Both the position numbers and the translations under genes were made by a program. The notes beneath the pieces were generated by a model. The model saw nothing but the letters and a program-made list of their open reading frames with translations. It had not been told where the DNA came from and ran no database searches. This document shows, in pieces, positions 38,563 to 51,600 of a stretch of DNA of 64,000 bases; position 1 is the first letter of the stretch, and each line of letters begins with the position of its first letter. Source of the stretch: Paraphysomonas bandaiensis (Eukaryota; Protista; Chrysophyceae). Location: NCBI GenBank assembly GCA_965644295.1, contig CBFFRP010000426.1:1-64000 (forward strand), given 5' to 3'.

Positions 38563-41500
38563 TTATTTTATATTACATAGTTTCGGGCCTGCCACTCCAT
38601 CGCTTTTGGAAGCAGTCCGATTTCTTGATTCGCCTTGCGTTACCGCTCTTCTTTTTCGTCCACCTAGCGCTTCATATTCATGAAGACGTTGAACCAGATT
38701 ATTAACCTCATTTAATGCTTCCTCCAGTGCACTTTGAATGGGTGAAATTTCAGCGTCTACAGCCTTTTCAATAAGTTGTTTTACTTCTGGAGTGAGCACA
38801 GGAGTGCTACTGGTATCAGGTAAACGATGCAGATTCATATGAGAAAGTCTATCTTGAATGAACATGAGCTTTAAATTAACAGCAGCATCCATTTCGCTAT
38901 CATCAATATCCTGGTTCCTTCTCCGTGAAAGTACAGGGCTGAGGGTATTTTCTTCTTCATTATCTACATTTGAATTTTCCATAGCATTCTCTGAGTCATC
39001 TCTTTCTGTCATACCAACGAGCCCAACAGGAAACCAACTGACATCATCATTTTCCATGCACTGACGAACGTAGAGCTCTAGACTGGTATCTTGACTGCGT
39101 GGTTGCTGCCAAATTCTCATCACAAAATACAGATAATTCCACATATTGTGCGCTTCAGAACGGTGTGTTTTGAAGTCACATGAGTTGGCGGCCCTTTTAT
39201 CAAATTCCTGTTGATCAATGCCACATATGAAGCACCGGCCATTCATATCCATCTCACGATCCATCTTTACTCCACGCAATTCCCCGAATGTATCGATAAT
39301 AATACCAAAAAATATATTCCTCAGGATCACAACAATGATAAAGTAAAAGGCAACATCGACAATTATTCTGATTCCGATAGTATCATTCATGTAACGCCCG
39401 ATTCCTTCCTCAGACCTGAAGCCGTAAGACACCATGAGTTTGAAACTCTGCCACAGAGAATTGCACACTAAGTGCAAGAACTCGTCCCGGAAAAACACGA
39501 ATATTGCACTAGCAAATATGTGAATAAATATAAGAATAATAGCGATCGTTGTAAGTAGCTGCCTTAATGGGTTGACAACTGCCAACATAACCTCCTTCGT
39601 CGCGGAGTCAACAGCCACAAACTCCAACAGCAAACATGACAACAAGAGTGGATTTCGATAGAAAGCTATCCATGCTATCAACGTGTGCACAAAGTACCAA
39701 AGTGGAGTTGGAGCGATTATCGCATAGAATGCCGACAACAAACGAGACTTTCCAGCATCAATATGACAAGCATACATCAGTGGAACGCGAACAACTAAAA
39801 TAATAGTCATGGTTAACATCACCAATGCAATGTGAATTCCGTTTAAAGCATGGATGATGTTGTAAATGTTCATAGGAAGGTATATATCATAAGGAGACGA
39901 GGACACAGATGAACCAGACTGCAAAGTGTGGGAAGTGAGATGACGAGAATCGATATAACCGATCACAGGATCATAAAAATTCGAACTCTCACTCTGCGGC
40001 TTTACGGTGAAGTGCATCGTCAAAAGAATATTCATTATAATAACATTGACCAAGAGAGTCTTTGCCAAAATGCCTTTCCACGCCCACAAATGAACAATAC
40101 CGAATGATTTCAGTGCTTCCTGGTGAACACCTTCGCGATGCAATTCTCTAGCTTTCCGTAAGAAATCGTTCAGCTTGATTTCTTGAGTCAAGAAATCAAC
40201 TTCTTCAGTAATTTTTCGTTTGCTACTCTCAGATAAATCCTTAGCAAGTCCTGGAATATGAAAGTAATGTCGGTGCAATTGTTGGTTCCAAACTACTTCC
40301 ACAGATGCTATGTCATTTTCGATACATGCTAGGGCATTGGATGGCATTTCAACATTCTTGTCATCGGTGGACTTAAGAAACACAAGATGCTTAGCTTGCA
40401 ATCGCGATAGTGAATCGATATCAACAGAAAACCCAAATTCATCTGTCTCTGGGGGTAATATTATCATATTTAATACATTGACTTCAATTGCAGTTTGAAT
40501 TCGCTCAAGCACAACTGAATCACTTTTGAGACCCTCGATTGAAGCCCTTAAAACATCGATGATGTACTCTTTCAGGATTTCGACATCCTGCTGCCACTCT
40601 AAGGTAAATACAAGAGATGGTCTTGATTGACGGATAAGCCGATTCAAAGCTGTCAACAGCTCAGTATGTAGTACAAAGTACTCCTGACTACCTTTACAAG
40701 GTCCATGCATCAGGCACAATATGGTGTGAATTACCCGCACAGCCACCTTAGTGCAAAATGGACTTTCAATTCTACTCAATAAATCTACGAAACCAGTCAA
40801 ATGGTCAAGTATATTCACGAACCGACTGTTTCCTTCCTGCTCCCGCATTATATTTTTGTTTGCTGAGAAATTTCCATCGCACATAGATGATATGAGTTTC
40901 AGGACAAATATCTCACTCGGAAGACTTGTATTCTGCTGCAGATCCGGATCACTCGCATTTTCAGCATCTCGTTGGCACCACACCTGGAGCTGTTCAAGTA
41001 GTTCTTTCAACTCCTCGAAGAACAATGTGGAATCTGTATTACTTAAGTACTGATAGATGCTCCTTTGCACTCGCGTGTGACCACCAAACTTACATAATAG
41101 CGCGACGAGAAGCTTCACAGCTTCAACACAAAGTTTGGAATCAATTCCAATGGATATAATATCAAGACAAAGATATGTGACACCATATTCATCCATAACC
41201 GTATGAAAATAAGACACCTCAAAGACCTCGGTATGAGTGAGAGGATCCGCAATAGTCTCAACAGAAACCTCAATATTTTTTTCAATAATATGACGCAATG
41301 TCGTCATGATCCAGATAGAAGTATCAACTGAACTCTTATCCAAATATCTAGCCGAAGTCGTCCGTTCAAGCTGATTGCGTAGATGCGTCGTCATTTTAAG
41401 AAAAAATGGTTCTAATCTTACGTCCGACACGACATTGTCGTAAACTGACGGAATCTTTTCCAGGAGTTCTAGAGACTGTGGATCAAACCCTGATCCACTG

Positions 41501-44500
41501 GAGCTGTGCGTCACGGTCGGAGCAATTATATCAACAAAAGCTGCAAACTGCTTTCTGTAAAACACTTGTTGAATCTCGGCGACAATCGATGCCCGTCTTG
41601 CAGTATTCTGAGTACGACGTCGCGGATTAGCTTGCATTGAATTGGAGTGGTGTGCATCATCAACGAAATCAGACCAACATTGCAATGTTGATTCAATAAT
41701 TCCTTTCGTGTTCTTTGACATCACGGTGGAATGGCGGTCAAGAAAGCGCTTGATAGATGTGAATAGATGAGTAATAATTAAGCGAATGTCCACTTCGGTT
41801 TTCTTTGTCAATGTTATAAAGGATTCATCATTTTCGTACGACGTGAGTTCATTAAACGTATCAAAGTCAAAATCATGAAAGAAAGATCGTGTTATTTCAA
41901 GAGAGTGGTTCAGCCATTCGATACGTATAAACAGCTTTCTATGGTTTTCACTTTTGATCATTAGGTTCGATAAATCTTGTTCGGAAAGAGTAAATATGGT
42001 CGTGAAGTGTTCAAATAGTTGCCACAATGACTCTGACGCCTCCATACTCTCAACCCGCGTATTTACCATCTCCACGACCAATAAGAGAAGGGCATTTCTG
42101 ACGTGGGGAATCGTGTTTGAATCTAAAATAGCAGCAACGGCATCATCCAGTTGATACACAGCCTGTAATTTTGGACCCAACTTGCACCCCGCCAGCAGTG
42201 TCAGCAATCTAATGTGGTATTGCAAGTCCGAAGAAAGTTCATCTTCATCTGGCACTTCTGTGTCGCATCTATAGGGCTCCATGGCATCAATTCGACTTTT
42301 GTATTCAAGAGAATCAGGGGAGCAGCACCACAATAAAATGTGAGATGACCTTTCCCCGTTTGTTATATACCGAGCTATTTCACTGTGAAGAGCGGACACC
42401 CCACTGTCACCAGTGTCGTTGATATCAGTCATGCCCACAAACAAATCCAGGTATTCTGGTTTACGACCGTTAGTTACTATTTTCTGCATAAATTCAGCCA
42501 AGTACCGTCGCTGACACTGCTTGATCAAATATCGATTCCCAGCCAAAATGGAGCGTACAACTCTGGAACTATGAACACCATCATCAACTCTATCAAGAAA
42601 CCACTCCATATGTTTGAATGCGACGGCTTGATTGACTTCATTGTTGTTGACAAAGTCAGCAATTAAATCATTGCAAACTAATACTATTCTCTTGATGTGA
42701 GCATGAGGGTCCCCTAAACTCGCATCAAGCAATGCCGCCTGTAATGACATAAAGCACGTCATTGCATCAAGGTTCAAAAGAACTTGCTGAATTTCTGTGT
42801 CGACAAGGGCGACCGGATTTAGATCAAAATCCTTCATCATAGGCTTCACTTTGACATAGTCCCGTATTGACACTAACGCATCATGGGCACATTGAGCGGC
42901 AGCAAGTTCCTGTGGACTTTCCATATCAGACCATACTTCAAAAGCCTCAGCTAATCGTTGCAGCTGCTTCAACCAATTAATGATATTCTTGTACTTCATT
43001 TCCATTTTTGGTGTGTAAATAATTTGCAGATTACGCATTGCGCTGTAGAGAAGGTCGTTTTGGCTTTTATGCAGCAACAAAATTCTGAGAGCTTCTTTGA
43101 CAAGGTTGGGATCCTTATACATAGCTACATCAATAAGCGTTTGATCAAACTTTTTTGGAATGGCCTCGTCAAGAGTTTGCTCAGTGGAGACGATCCGCAA
43201 GTATGTTTCTCTAGCATCAACGTACTTCCCTTGCATATCTGCTTCGTACCACTCCACAAAGGCCTTAATTGCGCACGTCAGCTTTCTGTCTTGAATTCTG
43301 GTGTGAATTTGTGATAGAATTCGCAATATACCTGCCAGCGTACGCACTTCATTTACTGTAGTTTTACTGTAGCGCTCAGGAATAACCCACGCATCACTCA
43401 CGTTAGCACGATCAGCAATTTTCTTGAGTAAACGCGCGGCACGAAAGACACGAATTAAGCGAAGAATGCGTACAGTTCTGCACTATGGTTAACTCGCATA
43501 AAATAATTAAAAACACTTACTTCAAGGATGTCCTGAAAGATGCTGCGTTCCCAAGGAATTGTGCGTCTAATCCCAGCAACACAATGTCAAAGATGACAAC
43601 AACAATATCTAACTGGTTGAGAGGGGACTTGATGAACGAGGAGAGCTGCTTGTGAACAGTGGCATAGCAGTACATGCGGGCGGAAAGCTCCGAAAGAAAT
43701 ATCATAGACACAGCGAAGTCAATACGTGCAATTACCCTCGTGACTTCCAAATTCAGGACAAGCTGCAATACAGAATACACGGAGGTACCAATTACCAGTG
43801 CTAATATTAACATCAATGCCGTCACTGATTCCATGTGGTTCAGCATTGTTTGCTGCCACGTTACACTTTCCTTTTTAAGTGGAATACTCGTGTCGGAGTT
43901 AGCGATTCTCAGCGCTTTCACTTCAGCAACACTCTTGCTCCGCTCACGCGCAGCACTATTTTCAGTTGAAGTATTAGTCTCAGATTTCTACAATATACGA
44001 TGAGTGGCTTTGTCATGTATCAAACTAATCATGTAACACTACCTTCATCCCCTCCCCTCCATCGGCTCCACTATTGTCGTGTGATTTCTGTGGCGCTGAG
44101 ACTGAACCACGAGTATTTCTTGCATTCCAGAAAGCAAGCGACGATGAGCGCCTTCGAAATTCCTTTTTATTATCTTCGTGCATTTCCTTGCTTCGATGAT
44201 CCTCCAGAGCCTGTCATATTCATTATGATAAGAATAATCGATATATGTGCAACGCAACCTGTACAAGTGGCACAGTGATGTCTTGTAAATGTTCAGGTGT
44301 ATGATAAAATCCGAATTCCACTAAAGAAAAAAGTAATTCCATCATCTCTGCTGTTAGCTCATTGCAGTCTGTGGTGTCCAAATCGTTGTGCAAGTACTGC
44401 GAGATGATATGCTGGAGAACTGCAAAAGTAAAAGGACTTCCTGTATATACTTGAATCACACGGAGACTACTAATACTAGTGACAATCTTACCAGAGTGAT

Positions 44501-47500
44501 GGTCACTAAACGAGTCTTCGACACCGCCTCCTAATGACACGGAAGTCTTAACCAAACGTGGAAATCTAGCCGCAATCTTAACACCACTTCTGAGCTACGA
44601 ATGAAAACTAAAAGCTATATATAACCTGTGGCTCTCGGTCAACATATAGTGTGCGAATCAATTTGCAGATAGGCGCTCTGATACGCGGGGGGTTAGTGGA
44701 AGAGCGCAAAAGTGTCAGCAGTGCATCTATAGTGTACTTCTGTTCCAGAAGGCCTATTGATACATAGTTGCGGTCAAGACAAAGATCAGCCGCCAGGTAC
44801 ATCTGTGCTATAAAATACTCCGAAATTTGAACCTTGCGCTCCACTATAGTTTTAACTTTGTGACTATGTGCTGTCTTTCTATTCTGCAAGCGTTTACTTC
44901 CTTGTTTGTGCAGCATCCCTGAATGTCGGCGTTTCCTGACCGCAGGGGATGTTGACGGCTGCTTCCGAACACTGAATTCTAATAGGTTATACATATATGA
45001 ATATCCTAAGAATATATCGTTGGTACCTCGATAGTGCCTGCGGCTCAGTGTTTATGGTGAGCCGTTTCTTAGCTCGATTGAGGCTGGCTATATCTCTACA
45101 AGAAAGTCTGTTAATATAACACTTAACGCGTTAAAAAATTTACTTCTTCGAGACATCAGTTAGATATTCCAAAGGAACAGGATCGTTTTTGCCGCATATT
45201 AGCTGCATGTTAAAGTCACAGTCGAAAGTGCACTCCCACTTGACCATCATTCTAGGCAACCCGTTCCTGACTAGACTAAGTCCAAGTACTTCTGCAAGGT
45301 CATGCTCTTCGGTCGGCATGTAGATTCTCATGTCAGTCCAGTTCGCCTGTTAAAAAATGAAATTTTCCGTTATGGAATAACGCAGTACGGGACTTACTTT
45401 TCTTAACGTTGTATAGTTGGCCTGGAGATCAATAACAAGCTTCGAAAAAGGAGTGGATGAAGCTGACAATTCCTGTGCCTTGGCATTTATATCAAAGCCA
45501 GATATCGGAGACGACTTGCTCCAGGTAATACTGTTGGACCCTTGTTTCTCAGCAGGAAGAATACTTTCAATTAGAGAGGCAGACTGCAGTATTTTGACGT
45601 CACGATCTCCATAAAGAGCTGATGCAACCATTCTTTGGGTATTATCGACACCACTGGGAGAAGAACATGTGCTCTGTACAATACATACAAAGAGTTACAG
45701 GGTGATGTCATGCAGACGTTAGCTGCATACCCGTAGCAACTTTAAAAGAGTCACATTCATGGGACTTTCTTCAAGCAAGTCAAGAAAAATTCGGATCTCG
45801 CGGTCACTAACCTGACTCGATATGAGCGAAGGGAAGTAAGCTGACAGTATCACATGAATTCACCTTGGTTTGGAGCATCTGCAGATTATCGCGCAAGATT
45901 TCTTGTACACATGCCACTGCATACTCCTGATCTTTCACCTACTCAACGTTCATCAAACACCATTCTCTACATGTGCACTTGTCGACAGTACCTGATTGAG
46001 TAATATGGGGAAACGATCCGCAATATGCATTTGGTTGATGTGGTTATTATTCAGACACAAGTACAAAACGTGAAAGCAGATATCTGTGAGGTCCCCATCA
46101 GACGTCGCGGATATAGAATCAACAGTTGAACTTCTCGGGCGACCTACTCCACGTAGACTAGAGTAAAAACTTCGTCTCGAAGTAAAGCGCCCGGTCCCTG
46201 TTGAGCGACCTAGCGATCTATTGGAATGGTCCGCGGGTACTCTCCCGGAACTCAAATCGTCCTCGTCATCGCTCTCGGCCTGAGACATCTGTATGATGTC
46301 CAGGAGGACGTCGAGAATCCCCTGTTCCCGCATCATAGTTTGTCGAGTCACGACAGTTGCGCCTCCCATAGGTTCTAGTTCTGCTTTTAATTGCCCCTGT
46401 TCGAACCCAAGCAGATTACACAGAGAAACGTCAAACTGATCTGAGTTCGTCTCGGACTTGAGAAATACGAGCAAATACTCTAGACAGACAAAAACATTTT
46501 TAAGTTCCGCTTCCGCTACACTCATGGGTTGGTCCAAGAAGCACAAAGACGTAACGGAAGTATGGAAACGTCGTAACACACTTGCCGCCTCCACGCCAAC
46601 ATATATATCTACTCCCATATTTTGATGTAGACGTGGTGAAACAACAAGTGAAATCGCAACCGATCTATCTTTGGCTCCAGTACAATGTGACTCAATCCCA
46701 GAGCTCCCGGCCCGTTTTAGAGACACCCAAGAGCCTCTACAACACAAATGTATAAGAGAACCTTCAACAATACTAGTCCCAACTTCCACTTGTTGAGATG
46801 ATACGACCTCAAACAGTGAGCACTCCCGTCGATTTTTGACAGCGCACACACCGTCAGCCTCCATCTTCATATACAATCCTGTGTTCAGGTCACGAAGTGC
46901 AATGTGGCCACTTCGATTCCCCACGGGACCACCCTTACACATGTCTTCGAATTCAACCATCCACAGAAGATTCGTGCCAACATTACAATCCGACGCTGCA
47001 AACGAGAGCTGTATGCTGTTGGACATTATGACATTTGCGCGTTGTGTGAGTCCTGGTTTCTGCTGATCCAAAGTTAAGTACGTTGATGTCTCTGGTTCCT
47101 GAAGAGACACCAACTGGCCGGCCAGCATGTGTTTCGACTTAGTCTCCTTGGCCTGCTGAAATATGCTAATTGTCCATATCGAGCTCTCGAGAGAACAGTT
47201 AATCTCCTTGTTGCCATCGGGGTTGGTCTTGGAAGCCTTTCGTGCGGCGTGGATATACTCACTTGATCTCTCGTGAACACGAATGAAACATTCGTTTTCG
47301 TTTACAATTTGCTGACCAACTCTGTCGTACTTATATCTTGGCATAAATTCTACCCAGCTCATCGCATCGCCGCCTTCCTTGAGATATACGCGCATATTCT
47401 CTCTCTCGTGTTTGGCAAGTGAGGACATTGAAATAGTAAGAAACTTTTTCGACTTAACATGTAGCAGTTGAATCACATCCCCGAACGTAATAGGCTTTCC

Positions 47501-47875
47501 AATTTTCATGGCCATCAACTTTTTGTTCAGTCTCTGCTCGTTCATTGCTGTACGTTTGAGTTGGGTCAGCTTTAACTCGTGATCTGACACTGCTTTGCTA
47601 ACGCTTCTTTCTGATTGGGGTGCATCCCTGATAATGTCGTCCCCCCCATCGACACCTAAAAGAGCATCCTCATACTCAGAACATGCGCTATACTGACTTT
47701 GAACAGTCACTTGCCATAAGCAGTTTTCAATAACACTGTTATCCCTCGCTAATACGCTGTCTATATTGATAACACCTTCTGCGGACAACCAACCCTCATT
47801 CGGCTTGGCATGTTTCAGGGTTATTATATCTCCTATCCTCAATTTATCAGTTCCGCTACCTTTGATACGATCCAT
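38563..47875 (-). CDS. IP3-receptor-family Ca2+-release channel (about 2,930 aa, 11 exons) with an inserted voltage-sensor domain
   Basis: Hand-spliced GT-AG exons 47875-45992, 45938-45864, 45811-45731, 45673-45398, 45346-45144, 45095-45027, 44971-44626, 44576-44259, 44210-44043, 43987-43521 and 43477-38563 total 8802 nt in one frame. IP3R motifs: LRIGDIITL, FGDVIQLLHVKSKKFLT, RQTMMREQ, LYVDREPQ, FGFY, RIH-assoc (SMCDGNF...REQ...HGPC), FGIIIDTFGELR, CFICGI...HNMWNY. Confidence 0.92.
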
Positions 47876-48616: not shown

Positions 48617-51600
48617 ATGAATGATATAGTAAAGAGACTGAAGCGTCTGGCTACATGTCCCTACAGGTCCTCCAAGGAGCAGAGATCCAGCGGGTACCAA
48701 CAGGTATCCCTGGCTCTTGCTCGTCAGAACTCTCAGAAGAGAGGAGAGCTAATGAACAGTTTCGACTGGATGCTTCCGGGCCGCCCGAGTCATGTTGCAA
48801 TGAAACGCAAAGTGATGCAGTACAAACAGATCTCGAAATGGGGGAAGTTTTGGGATATCATGCAAATATTTCTGTCAGTATTGACATGTTGCCTTTACAT
48901 AGCGGAGACGTATACCCCTGGTTATAACGAGCACCAATTGTACAAATGGAATGAGATAGTCGTGACTCAATTTTTTTTACTTGATTTTATATTCAATTGG
49001 TTCACAGCTATCAACACGAAAATTTTCTTTCAAAATATTATGACAATAGTTGATGTCTTGACGATCGTGCCTGTTTATATTAGCTTTAGTACTGGGAGCG
49101 CGGTGAACCTGTCTATATTTCGATTTATTCGTATTCTCCGACTGGTTAGGGTACTGAGAACATTTCGACTTCTGGGTGATCTAAGCGGACTTAAGCGCCA
49201 ACTAATAACATTGAGTCTCACTCTACTCAGCCTATCATTCATGGCCGCCGGCATTGTAAATGTGATGGAGAACGATGTGCAGCAGCTCACGTACGACTGC
49301 CAGTATATCAATGCGTACACGAACTACCGTCCGTCATGTGATCGATGGACTGATACCTACGATTCGGAGTCCTGTGATTGTAAGGAGAATAACTGTATGG
49401 CTGTTTATAACCGGCACGATGATCGATATGAACCAACCGGTATAACTTGCGTCAAGTTACCATTTTTTGACTGCTTTTACTTCATTGTGGTGACAATATC
49501 TACTGTGGGATACGGGGATATAGCAGCAAGCACCACGCCATCCCGTGCAGTTATCCTGCTCTTCATCTTAACATCTGCTGTGGTTATCCCAATGCAGCTC
49601 AAACAGCTCACCAATCTTCTCTCTGCCCACTCGGTATTCCGCCGTGCGTATATATCGGATGGTACTGAGGAGCATGTGGTGTTGTGCGGACATGTCAATA
49701 ATAGGCAAAAATTGGAGAGATTTTTGAAGGAATTTTTTCATCCCGATCGTATGCTACCTTCGTCCCCCCACTTCCACATTGTGGTGTTATGTCCCGAAGA
49801 CCCTACAGAAGAGGTGCGTTCGTTACTCGTATCGCCTAGGTTTGACTCTCGGGTAACTTACCTCATTGGATCCGCACTCTCTGTCGAAGATCTCCAGCGT
49901 TGCCGAGTGGATATCGCCTCTGCAGTGTTTTTCCTTTCGAAAATTGAGGCTAAGGAAGAGGAAGCACTCGCCGAAGGCACTACTACTGTGTTACGCACAC
50001 TCGCTGTCACAGATTTTAACCCTGATATTCAGTGTTTGGTAGAGGTTCTTCACACACACGACAGCGACATTTTAAAGAATAGTGATGTAGAGGTAGTGTT
50101 ATGCGTGGACGAGTTTAAAACAGTTTTGCTAGCAAGGAACTCTGGTTGTCCTGGTATAAGCACGCTGATTAACAACCTTTTCCGAACGTACGGTGGGCCC
50201 TGTAAAGCTAATAGTGAGCACTGGATGACAGAGTACCATTACGGCCAGTGTATGGAGACCTACTATGTTCCACTGACCAAAATGTTTATGGAAGCTTTTA
50301 AGTTTGAATGGAACATTGCTGCAGAGAGTGTGTATCTGGAGTACGGGTGTATGCTGATTGGTGTCTTTGAGTCTTCCACTGGCGCTATTCATCTTAATCC
50401 TATGCAACTCAATTTCAAGGCTAACATGGTGGATGTGATGTATTTTGCAATCGTTATTGCCCCGGACCAGCATACAGCATCCAGTATTGCCAAAGGCATT
50501 GGAGAGTACTCTACTATTGCTCGGCTAACTAATGGTGTAATCGACGCTGAATATCGATTTGGTGTGAGAGCATTACCTAAGCAAGAAGGAACAATGCAGC
50601 GCGCTCAAAGCTCTCGGCGTAATTTCGATCCACATACGAAAGAAGACCGCCCGCAAATGCAGGATATGACTTTGTTCTGCAAACTACTGCGGCGACAGAG
50701 GCAAGGGCAGTTAATGACTGGCGGTTATGTGAAAGGTGCGGTGAATAGTAGTGGTCGTTCCACGAATTCTTCTGAAACAAGTTCCAGTGAAAGAAACAGT
50801 GTGTTGAAACCAAGCAACATGGTTCAACCAAGGAATTCGTTGCTGCGTGGAAGTAAAGTGGAATATTCTGCCGAAGACCTGGGTCAGATTACTCACGCAC
50901 ATCACCTCACACAGCATATCATAGTTCTCGGTTGTAAGGATAATGTTGCCACTTTTGTGGCTTATGCAGACCTCGACATTGTGACATCGATGAATGAGAT
51001 GCGTCGGCCCATACTCTACGTTGGAAGCGAACTCCCACGCAGATGGATGGCTCTCCGAAAGAAGCATCCGGAGCTCTATTTCCTCGAGGGTGACATATCA
51101 CTGAAAACAACATTCTCTCGAATGAATATATCTAAAGCATACAGTGTGATTATGCTGGCACATCGGCGGGAAGAGCTAGAGTTCGAAGAAGACGAAAACT
51201 TAGACTTCGAAATGTTGTTTTTGTACCTTAAAATATCGTCTTTCATACCGTCGACAGTCAATTTTACGATCGAACTGACAAGCGGTCGGAACATGAGCGT
51301 CTTAAACACTGTGGCCGTCAAAAAGGAACGCCGAGAACAATTGATGGAGGCGATGCATGGTGACCTCGATGAGCCATCAGTGTCTTTGCAAGACAAGATG
51401 ATGGTGGATGCAATAGCTGATGTGACTGGAGGTGAGACAATGGTTTCTGTTTGTACATAGTTTGTCGCACCAATGTAGATAGCTTTTCTGTTTACCACGC
51501 TACTCATGGAGATTAGTATCCTCATGAGTACCTATGTAATCTCACATTTTTTACTGCCAGAGCGAGAGATGTTACTGGACCAACTGCGTGGCATGTATCA

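Follow-up and report, generated by a model that had tools for sequence, protein, structure and literature searches.

Can a single polypeptide carry both a voltage sensor and an intracellular channel of the IP3 receptor (IP3R) or ryanodine receptor (RyR) type? These receptors are textbook ligand-gated release channels, on which voltage acts indirectly through CaV1.1 or a second messenger. The question is raised by a gene in the window analysed here, a stretch of 64,000 nucleotides from the chrysophyte Paraphysomonas bandaiensis (assembly GCA_965644295.1, contig CBFFRP010000426.1, positions 1 to 64,000), in which an initial annotation, made from the letters alone, had read the four helices of a voltage-sensor domain (VSD) within the cytosolic part of an IP3R-like channel. 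We find that the locus encodes a genuine variant architecture within the IP3R/RyR superfamily, one that is both expressed and conserved, and for which a voltage-controlled function is well motivated by the sequence.

One expressed gene encodes sensor and channel

Guided by spliced transcript contigs, we modelled the gene on the reverse strand as 12 exons, which together form a single open reading frame (ORF) of 2916 amino acids (aa) with 0 internal stops, so that the exons flanking the sensor do splice in frame, as had been proposed. At some exon junctions a shift of 1–2 nt is possible, with the product unchanged. The 11 introns are all of the GT..AG type (CT..AC on the plus strand) and all are removed in transcript contigs from three runs. 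These contigs, from the same organism and 8298, 8338 and 8392 nt long, start in exon 1 and reach into the 3′ part of the terminal exon, and skip exactly positions 43478–43520 as well as the ten further introns. The intron so removed is the 43-bp one postulated between S3 and S4, and it splits a Lys codon (AA/A) that provides the leading Lys of S4. The transcript evidence consists of assembled contigs from runs whose RNA nature is only guessed; since the contigs lack eleven introns, spliced RNA must be their source. The DNA runs of this organism contain 100% of the sampled sequence words, and a 255-nt contig from a marine plankton metatranscriptome falls within the VSD exon at an identity of at least 99%. 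Exon 11 is 467 nt long, so that its skipping would shift the frame, and as S4 lies in the last exon the sensor cannot be removed in frame by any simple exon skip. We conclude that a single expressed gene lies here, with one transcript, VSD exon included, and one polypeptide.

The insert is a complete voltage-sensor domain

The signatures attributed to S2, S3 and S4 in the initial annotation all hold in the translation (Table 1). S4 reads KTVRILRLIRVFRAARLLKK (43522..43420 across the intron) and carries Lys or Arg at seven positions, every third residue, while the exon that follows the 43-bp intron begins TVRILRLIRVFRAARLLKK. The charge-transfer centre, formed by the S2 Phe, the S2 acid and the S3 Asp, is complete in the window exon. 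In an alignment of 72 family sequences of 20–50% identity, the S2 Phe is kept in 68, the S2 Glu or Asp in all 72 and the S2 Arg in 67, the first S3 Asp in 72 and the second in 66, and the seven S4 positions are basic in 61 to 72 sequences. The conserved charges together with the charge-transfer centre are the signature of a charge-translocating sensor and not of a TRP-like S1–S4 scaffold.

Homology searches agree with this assignment. The joined 12-exon protein was used to check the frame, to locate motifs and transmembrane (TM) segments, for a local profile score and as one row of the tree described below. A local family VSD profile matches it from end to end (aa 1172–1301, E 5.7e-38), well outside what chance would give. 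The S1–S3 exon alone matches Pfam Ion_trans at positions 6–87 with E 2.4e-4, under the gathering score because S4 lies beyond the intron; relatives with an uninterrupted S1–S4 match positions 3–125 at E 1e-7 to 1e-13. When the VSD segment of one such relative, P0004, is compared with PDB sequences, it finds Cav3.2 (E 2.4e-10), Cav3.1, Cav1.1, KCNQ1/2, TPTE2 and Nav sensors. A region-restricted homologue search with the same VSD, limited by a word filter, retrieved two proteins.

For the fold we modelled P0004, the closest relative that has S1–S4 in one stored protein, in place of the window protein itself. Folded without an alignment, P0004:505–700 gave an unusable model (predicted local distance difference test, pLDDT, 46), which was replaced by an AlphaFold2 model of P0004:505–802 built on a family alignment of 73 rows (mean pLDDT 89.5). 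Residues 4–141 of this model superpose on VSD-IV of Nav1.7 with Z 14.2 and a root mean square deviation of 2.7 Å over 129 residues; the model also matches the VSD of Ci-VSP (Z 13.4, 3.3 Å over 132 of 136 residues), Cav3.1 (Z 13.2, 2.2 Å over 113) and the coccolithophore channel NaVEh (Z 13.2). In a structural search against representatives, practically the entire top list consists of voltage sensors. Foldseek, run on the two-domain model, likewise returns voltage-gated channels as all of its top matches, with weak E-values (best 2.4e-3) owing to alignments that extended into unrelated helices; VIA-align resolved the VSD part. Atlas searches returned generic VSD neighbours, with a single weak hint of Haptophyta on which no taxonomic conclusion is based. 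Chance Z values of this kind can occur among helical bundles, but the agreement with sequence homology removes the doubt. On both sequence and model, the S1–S4 insert is a complete voltage-sensor domain, most like the sensors of Cav, Nav and Kv channels.

Domain architecture

The protein reads, from its N-terminus, as an IP3R N-terminal domain, MIR, RIH, the S1–S4 voltage sensor, RIH, RIH_assoc and a six-helix pore with a CFICG zinc finger. Ins145_P3_rec and MIR are found in the N-terminal beta-trefoil region at Pfam E-values of 2.4e-25 and 2.2e-7, RYDR_ITPR in exons 1 and 12, and RIH_assoc with the pore half of Ion_trans in the last exon. Searching the sequences of solved PDB chains, the N-terminus matches IP3R1/3 (E 4e-21) and the C-terminus ITPR2 2475–2710 (E 2e-32), and in all such matches IP3R scores better than RyR. 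A single-sequence search of the RIH_assoc region against the PDB gave no match. Hydrophobic segments in the TM scan fall at aa 1178–1270, which is the VSD, and in five to six helices at aa ~2415–2664, so that the normal C-terminal channel domain described in the initial annotation is indeed present, with a different filter sequence. Of the two Glu residues that we take to belong to the Ca2+ site, mapped by eye and not used as evidence, one is retained, and Asp stands in place of the other (CDGN vs CEGH), which is the second in sequence. By its sequence the protein is a member of the IP3R/RyR channel superfamily.

The sensor replaces a loop of the scaffold

The insert had been placed between an FGFY motif and a scaffold helix on the strength of IP3R motifs, and family profiles of the two flanks align to IP3R at just these elements. 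The upstream profile aligns up to FGFY...LLAILD, at IP3R1/2 residue ~897–906 (E 1e-28), and the downstream profile from IP3R1 residue 968 onwards (968–1337, E 1e-52). From these alignments the sensor takes the place of a loop of about 60 residues, IP3R1 ~906 to ~968, in the central helical linker region.

The two connections of the sensor to the scaffold differ. The upstream tether varies in length by more than 100 residues across the family, whereas S4 and the motif W-x-x-P-x-R-Y are, with few exceptions, 5–13 residues apart in the 51 sequences in which the motif was found (median 8, with an outlier of 20). A linker of constrained length after S4, set against a variable tether before S1, is what would be expected if S4 motion passes to the scaffold at its C-terminal end, in the manner of voltage-sensing phosphatases. 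In place of the classical arrangement, in which an S4–S5 linker leads into S5–P–S6, S4 is here followed by W-x-x-P-x-R-Y and then by IP3R1-like scaffold helices.

A family of protist channels

To find the same domain order elsewhere we ran an exhaustive profile search with the VSD and 170 downstream residues, which at E <= 1e-30 returned 82 cluster representatives (clustering at 50% identity). Nearly every one shows a continuous match across both parts, at residue ~1000–1600 of proteins 2000–3700 aa long; four-repeat Cav/Nav channels enter only from E ~1e-24. Considering the 16 full-length representatives, Pfam finds RIH and RIH_assoc in all of them, Ins145_P3_rec in 15 and Ion_trans in 14. 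The whole architecture occurs in single uninterrupted genomic or metagenomic ORFs (P0017, 2603 aa; P0047, 3041 aa; P0055, 3425 aa) and in a complete MMETSP transcript ORF (P0196), and several relatives are EukProt gene models. A word-limited homologue search brought up no family member among the named NCBI or UniRef proteins.

Within the 62.6-Mb genome of the window there are 12 loci of the IP3R/RyR superfamily, of which 8 bear the sensor. In each of the six further paralogues that we read, the sensor is complete and S4 carries five to seven charges. The paralogue on C409 appears to share the intron position of the window gene, and the other six have no intron there.

For the phylogeny we ran FastTree on 1048 columns that lie C-terminal to the sensor; none of the sensor's own columns was included. 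All 55 rows that bear the VSD form one clade with support 100. The animal IP3Rs, the RyRs and two protist homologues without the sensor lie outside it, and a single change suffices to account for the trait. In sequence terms, the VSD-IP3R design is an old, conserved family of single origin, with many marine protist sequences.

Some further observations concern relatives of the gene. EF-hand pairs, a possible built-in Ca2+ sensor, occur in 2 of the 16 full-length representatives. A 446-kb ENA contig of another genome (L008:1–15126) carries two divergent family genes side by side, one of them a 3041-aa intronless ORF. Two ORFs of ~400 aa in the genome of the window (G000:C357:116668–117291 and C363:170233–170859) match the family profile from S1 to position 196, a span that covers the sensor and the linker and helix after it, at E ~1e-7; they could encode either small VSD proteins or channels with six helices.

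Ligand site and selectivity filter

Two sites of animal IP3Rs have changed in the window protein. The RTTGR stretch of beta-trefoil 2 is reportedly among the IP3-coordinating basic residues of the binding core, and here the equivalent residues read SNSIQ. With RTTGR lost, IP3 is unlikely as the trigger and voltage may have replaced it; judged by its sequence, the channel is probably not IP3-gated. The filter, for its part, reads SEEGIGR, as compared to GGGVGD in IP3R and GGGIGDE in RyR. The position of the key filter Asp is Arg in the window protein and varies across the family, in which only P0093 keeps GGGIGD.

Table 1. Features of the sensor-bearing channel gene and related loci (positions in the window unless a contig is named)
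Feature	Position	Strand	Basis or remark
Whole VSD-containing IP3R/RyR-superfamily channel gene	38563..47875	-	Spliced transcript contigs, single ORF; 12 exons, 2916 aa
Exons 1–6	47875-45990, 45936-45862, 45809-45731, 45673-45397, 45345-45144, 45095-45027	-	
Exons 7–12	44971-44626, 44576-44491, 44439-44258, 44209-44043, 43987-43521, 43477-38563	-	
Exon 1: IP3R-type N-terminal region (Ins145_P3_rec aa 11–244, MIR, first RIH)	45990..47875	-	Pfam; PDB sequence match
RTTGR-equivalent site, reads SNSIQ	47003..47032	-	Alignment to IP3R1 N-terminus
FGFY...PLVQALED motif, aa 1049–1071, spans intron 44257-44210	44199..44315	-	Last IP3R-alignable element before insert, ~IP3R1 906
Variable low-complexity N-terminal tether, ~105 aa, scaffold to S1, including intron 44042-43988	43826..44198	-	
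VSD S1, aa 1178–1197	43766..43825	-	Exon translation, TM scan
VSD S2, aa 1212–1229, F-x-x-E-x-x-x-R (charge-transfer Phe, acid, Arg)	43670..43723	-	Translation, family alignment
VSD S3, aa 1244–1263, N-x-x-D and second Asp	43568..43627	-	Translation, family alignment
43-bp intron at S3–S4 loop/S4 boundary, GTAAGT..CAG	43478..43520	-	Absent from three transcript contigs
VSD S4, aa 1279–1298, K,R,R,R,R,R,K every third residue	43420..43477 (first codon starts 43522-43521)	-	Translation, family alignment
Short conserved S4-to-scaffold linker IADRANVSDAWVIPERY, family motif W-x-x-P-x-R-Y	43369..43419	-	
First scaffold helix after insert, VRTLAGILRILSQIHTRIQDRKL, equivalent to IP3R1 968–990	43279..43347	-	Profile alignment
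Rest of scaffold (second RIH, RIH_assoc) and C-terminal channel	38566..43278	-	Pfam, PDB match, TM scan
Selectivity-filter region YGFRSEEGIGRYM	39388..39426	-	Alignment to ITPR2
CFICG...H...H zinc finger, from aa 2694	39124..39234	-	Motif scan
Sensor-bearing paralogues besides the window gene	G000: C409, C288, C182, C324, C152, C238, C46		
Sensor-less IP3R/RyR-superfamily loci	G000: C148, C363, C395, C144		

Proposed mechanism and alternatives

We propose that the VSD would share a membrane with the six-helix pore domain of its channel (a cis arrangement of 4 + 6 helices). Such a topology is consistent with the four helices of the sensor, which return both of its ends to the cytosol, and agrees with the insertion of all helices at one translocon. 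A change in voltage would then move S4, which, via the short W-x-x-P-x-R-Y linker, would pull on the helix with which the scaffold's central linker region begins, while the N-terminal tether, long and variable, would do no more than supply slack. Voltage would in this way bias the allosteric scaffold that in animals opens the pore after binding of IP3 and Ca2+, replacing IP3 as the primary stimulus, with Ca2+ possibly still a co-agonist. The logic would be nearer to that of a voltage-sensing phosphatase, where the VSD drives a cytosolic module, than to that of Kv channels, where the S4–S5 linker pushes on the pore. The conserved charges, the charge-transfer centre and the length-constrained linker strengthen the earlier suggestion of a directly voltage-gated release channel, and from sequence and model together we consider it rather probable that the insert is a working sensor in the membrane of the pore, with S4 biasing the scaffold and voltage in place of IP3. 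For the more far-reaching claim, that this family within the IP3R/RyR superfamily is gated by voltage directly, with a sensor of its own in place of IP3, and in the boldest version that this sensor would read another membrane at a contact site, we see the chances as evenly balanced.

Several points weigh against this proposal. In a few family members the S4 charges have been lost, which makes the sensor dispensable for some lineages. The tree was made with FastTree only, with few VSD-less outgroups and on long outgroup branches. Given the non-canonical filter, the label "Ca2+ release" is an assumption. The central linker region of animal IP3Rs, moreover, is one we take to sit well above the membrane, and a short S4 linker then needs either a rearranged scaffold or another membrane. 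Finally, the endoplasmic reticulum (ER) is usually taken to hold little steady membrane potential, and the relevant membrane may be that of another compartment.

That the whole construction is an artefact, be it a fusion by mis-assembly, read-through or a wrong splice model, is scarcely conceivable; we tried this explanation, found no support for it and rejected it, as spliced contigs of three runs span exon 1 to the 3′ end, the DNA runs hold all of the sampled words, and the same order recurs in 8 paralogues here and in the intronless ORFs P0017, P0047 and P0055 of other genomes. A more serious possibility is that the domain is insensitive to voltage, much like the S1–S4 domains of TRP channels, and serves to anchor the protein in a membrane a second time, to sense a lipid or ligand, or to act as a structural tether. 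Non-sensing S1–S4 bundles are common, TRP channels and domain I of TPC do appear lower in the structural matches, and the loss of S4 charges in some relatives fits the same idea. However, TRP-type S1–S4 domains have no arginine ladder, whereas here the seven S4 basic residues, the S2 Phe and acid and both S3 Asp are conserved across sequences with only 20–40% identity elsewhere and across the 8 paralogues, as would be expected if selection acted on charge translocation, and we regard a voltage-insensitive domain as unlikely.

The sensor could also work in a different place or in a different way. In a junction-spanning (trans) arrangement the pore would sit in the store membrane and the VSD in an apposed one, for example the plasma membrane, and a single polypeptide would do the work that CaV1.1 and RyR1 share in skeletal muscle. 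The position of the insert in the cytosolic scaffold, more than 1100 aa from the pore helices, and the short S4-to-scaffold linker speak for this, as does the animal scaffold geometry, which, if kept, would presumably put the VSD away from the pore membrane. Yet a polypeptide normally has all of its TM segments inserted at a single ER translocon, and no protein is known to us whose integral helices lie in two membranes; we rate the cis arrangement well above a junction-spanning one, which we think improbable. It is also conceivable that the VSD itself conducts ions, by an Hv1-like proton path or an omega current, and provides a counter-ion or pH pathway instead of controlling the gate. Hv1 demonstrates conduction by a VSD alone, and an Hv1-like Atlas cluster is among the structural neighbours. 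But S1 is fully hydrophobic, without the selectivity Asp of Hv1, the S4 ladder is ungapped with up to seven charges, and the nearest sensors by sequence are those of Cav, Nav and Kv channels and not Hv1, all of which makes this highly improbable.

Neighbouring and other genes

Head-to-head with the sensor-bearing gene lies a BK/Slo-type K+ channel gene (48617–51460, plus strand; Pfam Ion_trans, Ion_trans_2, Slo-like_RCK and BK_channel_a), the two ATGs being separated by 741 bp. We found no BK-like match near the other seven paralogues on their contigs, so the pairing is not conserved within the genome. Silicon-transporter (SIT) genes score above the Pfam cut-off on seven contigs of the same genome (G000 C348, C406, C398, C150, C405, C298 and C149).

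Relation to known systems and significance

The closest known systems are the animal IP3 receptors (ITPR1–3), with which the window protein shares Ins145_P3_rec, MIR, two RIH domains, RIH_assoc, the six-helix pore and the CFICG...H...H zinc finger, and from which it differs by the VSD at the ~907–967 loop, by SNSIQ for RTTGR and by SEEGIGR for GGGVGD. A functional analogy is offered by CaV1.1 and RyR1 of skeletal muscle, where a Cav-type sensor is mechanically tied to a scaffold of the same superfamily; muscle, however, uses two proteins in two membranes, whereas here there is one polypeptide. In the voltage-sensing phosphatases Ci-VSP and TPTE2, as in the present family, S4 leads over a short conserved linker to a cytosolic module and not to S5–S6, though the effector in the window protein is a channel scaffold instead of a phosphatase, and its VSD is internal and not N-terminal. 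The PKDRR proteins of oomycetes, which are polycystin–RyR fusions (PMC7399828), are a further case of a protist recombining RyR/IP3R-type domains with another channel family; there, a PKD2-type channel reportedly bears the RyR domains, and no charged S4 is reported within an IP3R scaffold.

The initial annotation knew of no such architecture, and our full-text literature search, with most subscription journals beyond its reach, found no published description of a VSD within an IP3R or RyR. A review of oomycete IP3Rs does not mention voltage, and a survey of the evolution of ER Ca2+ stores does not describe the architecture. A survey of diatom Ca2+ channels (PMC11085791) reports no IP3R in diatoms and proposes that their fast Ca2+ waves depend on a "novel channel type".

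If the proposed function is correct, the family would represent a third way of coupling voltage to an IP3R/RyR-type channel, one that needs no partner protein, and marine protists would possess excitation–release coupling within one protein. The sensor would then be a natural experiment on how force is transmitted from the scaffold to the pore, and the protein a compact candidate tool for voltage-controlled Ca2+ release. For algal physiology the finding is relevant in that a genome with silicon transporters also holds 12 loci of the IP3R superfamily.

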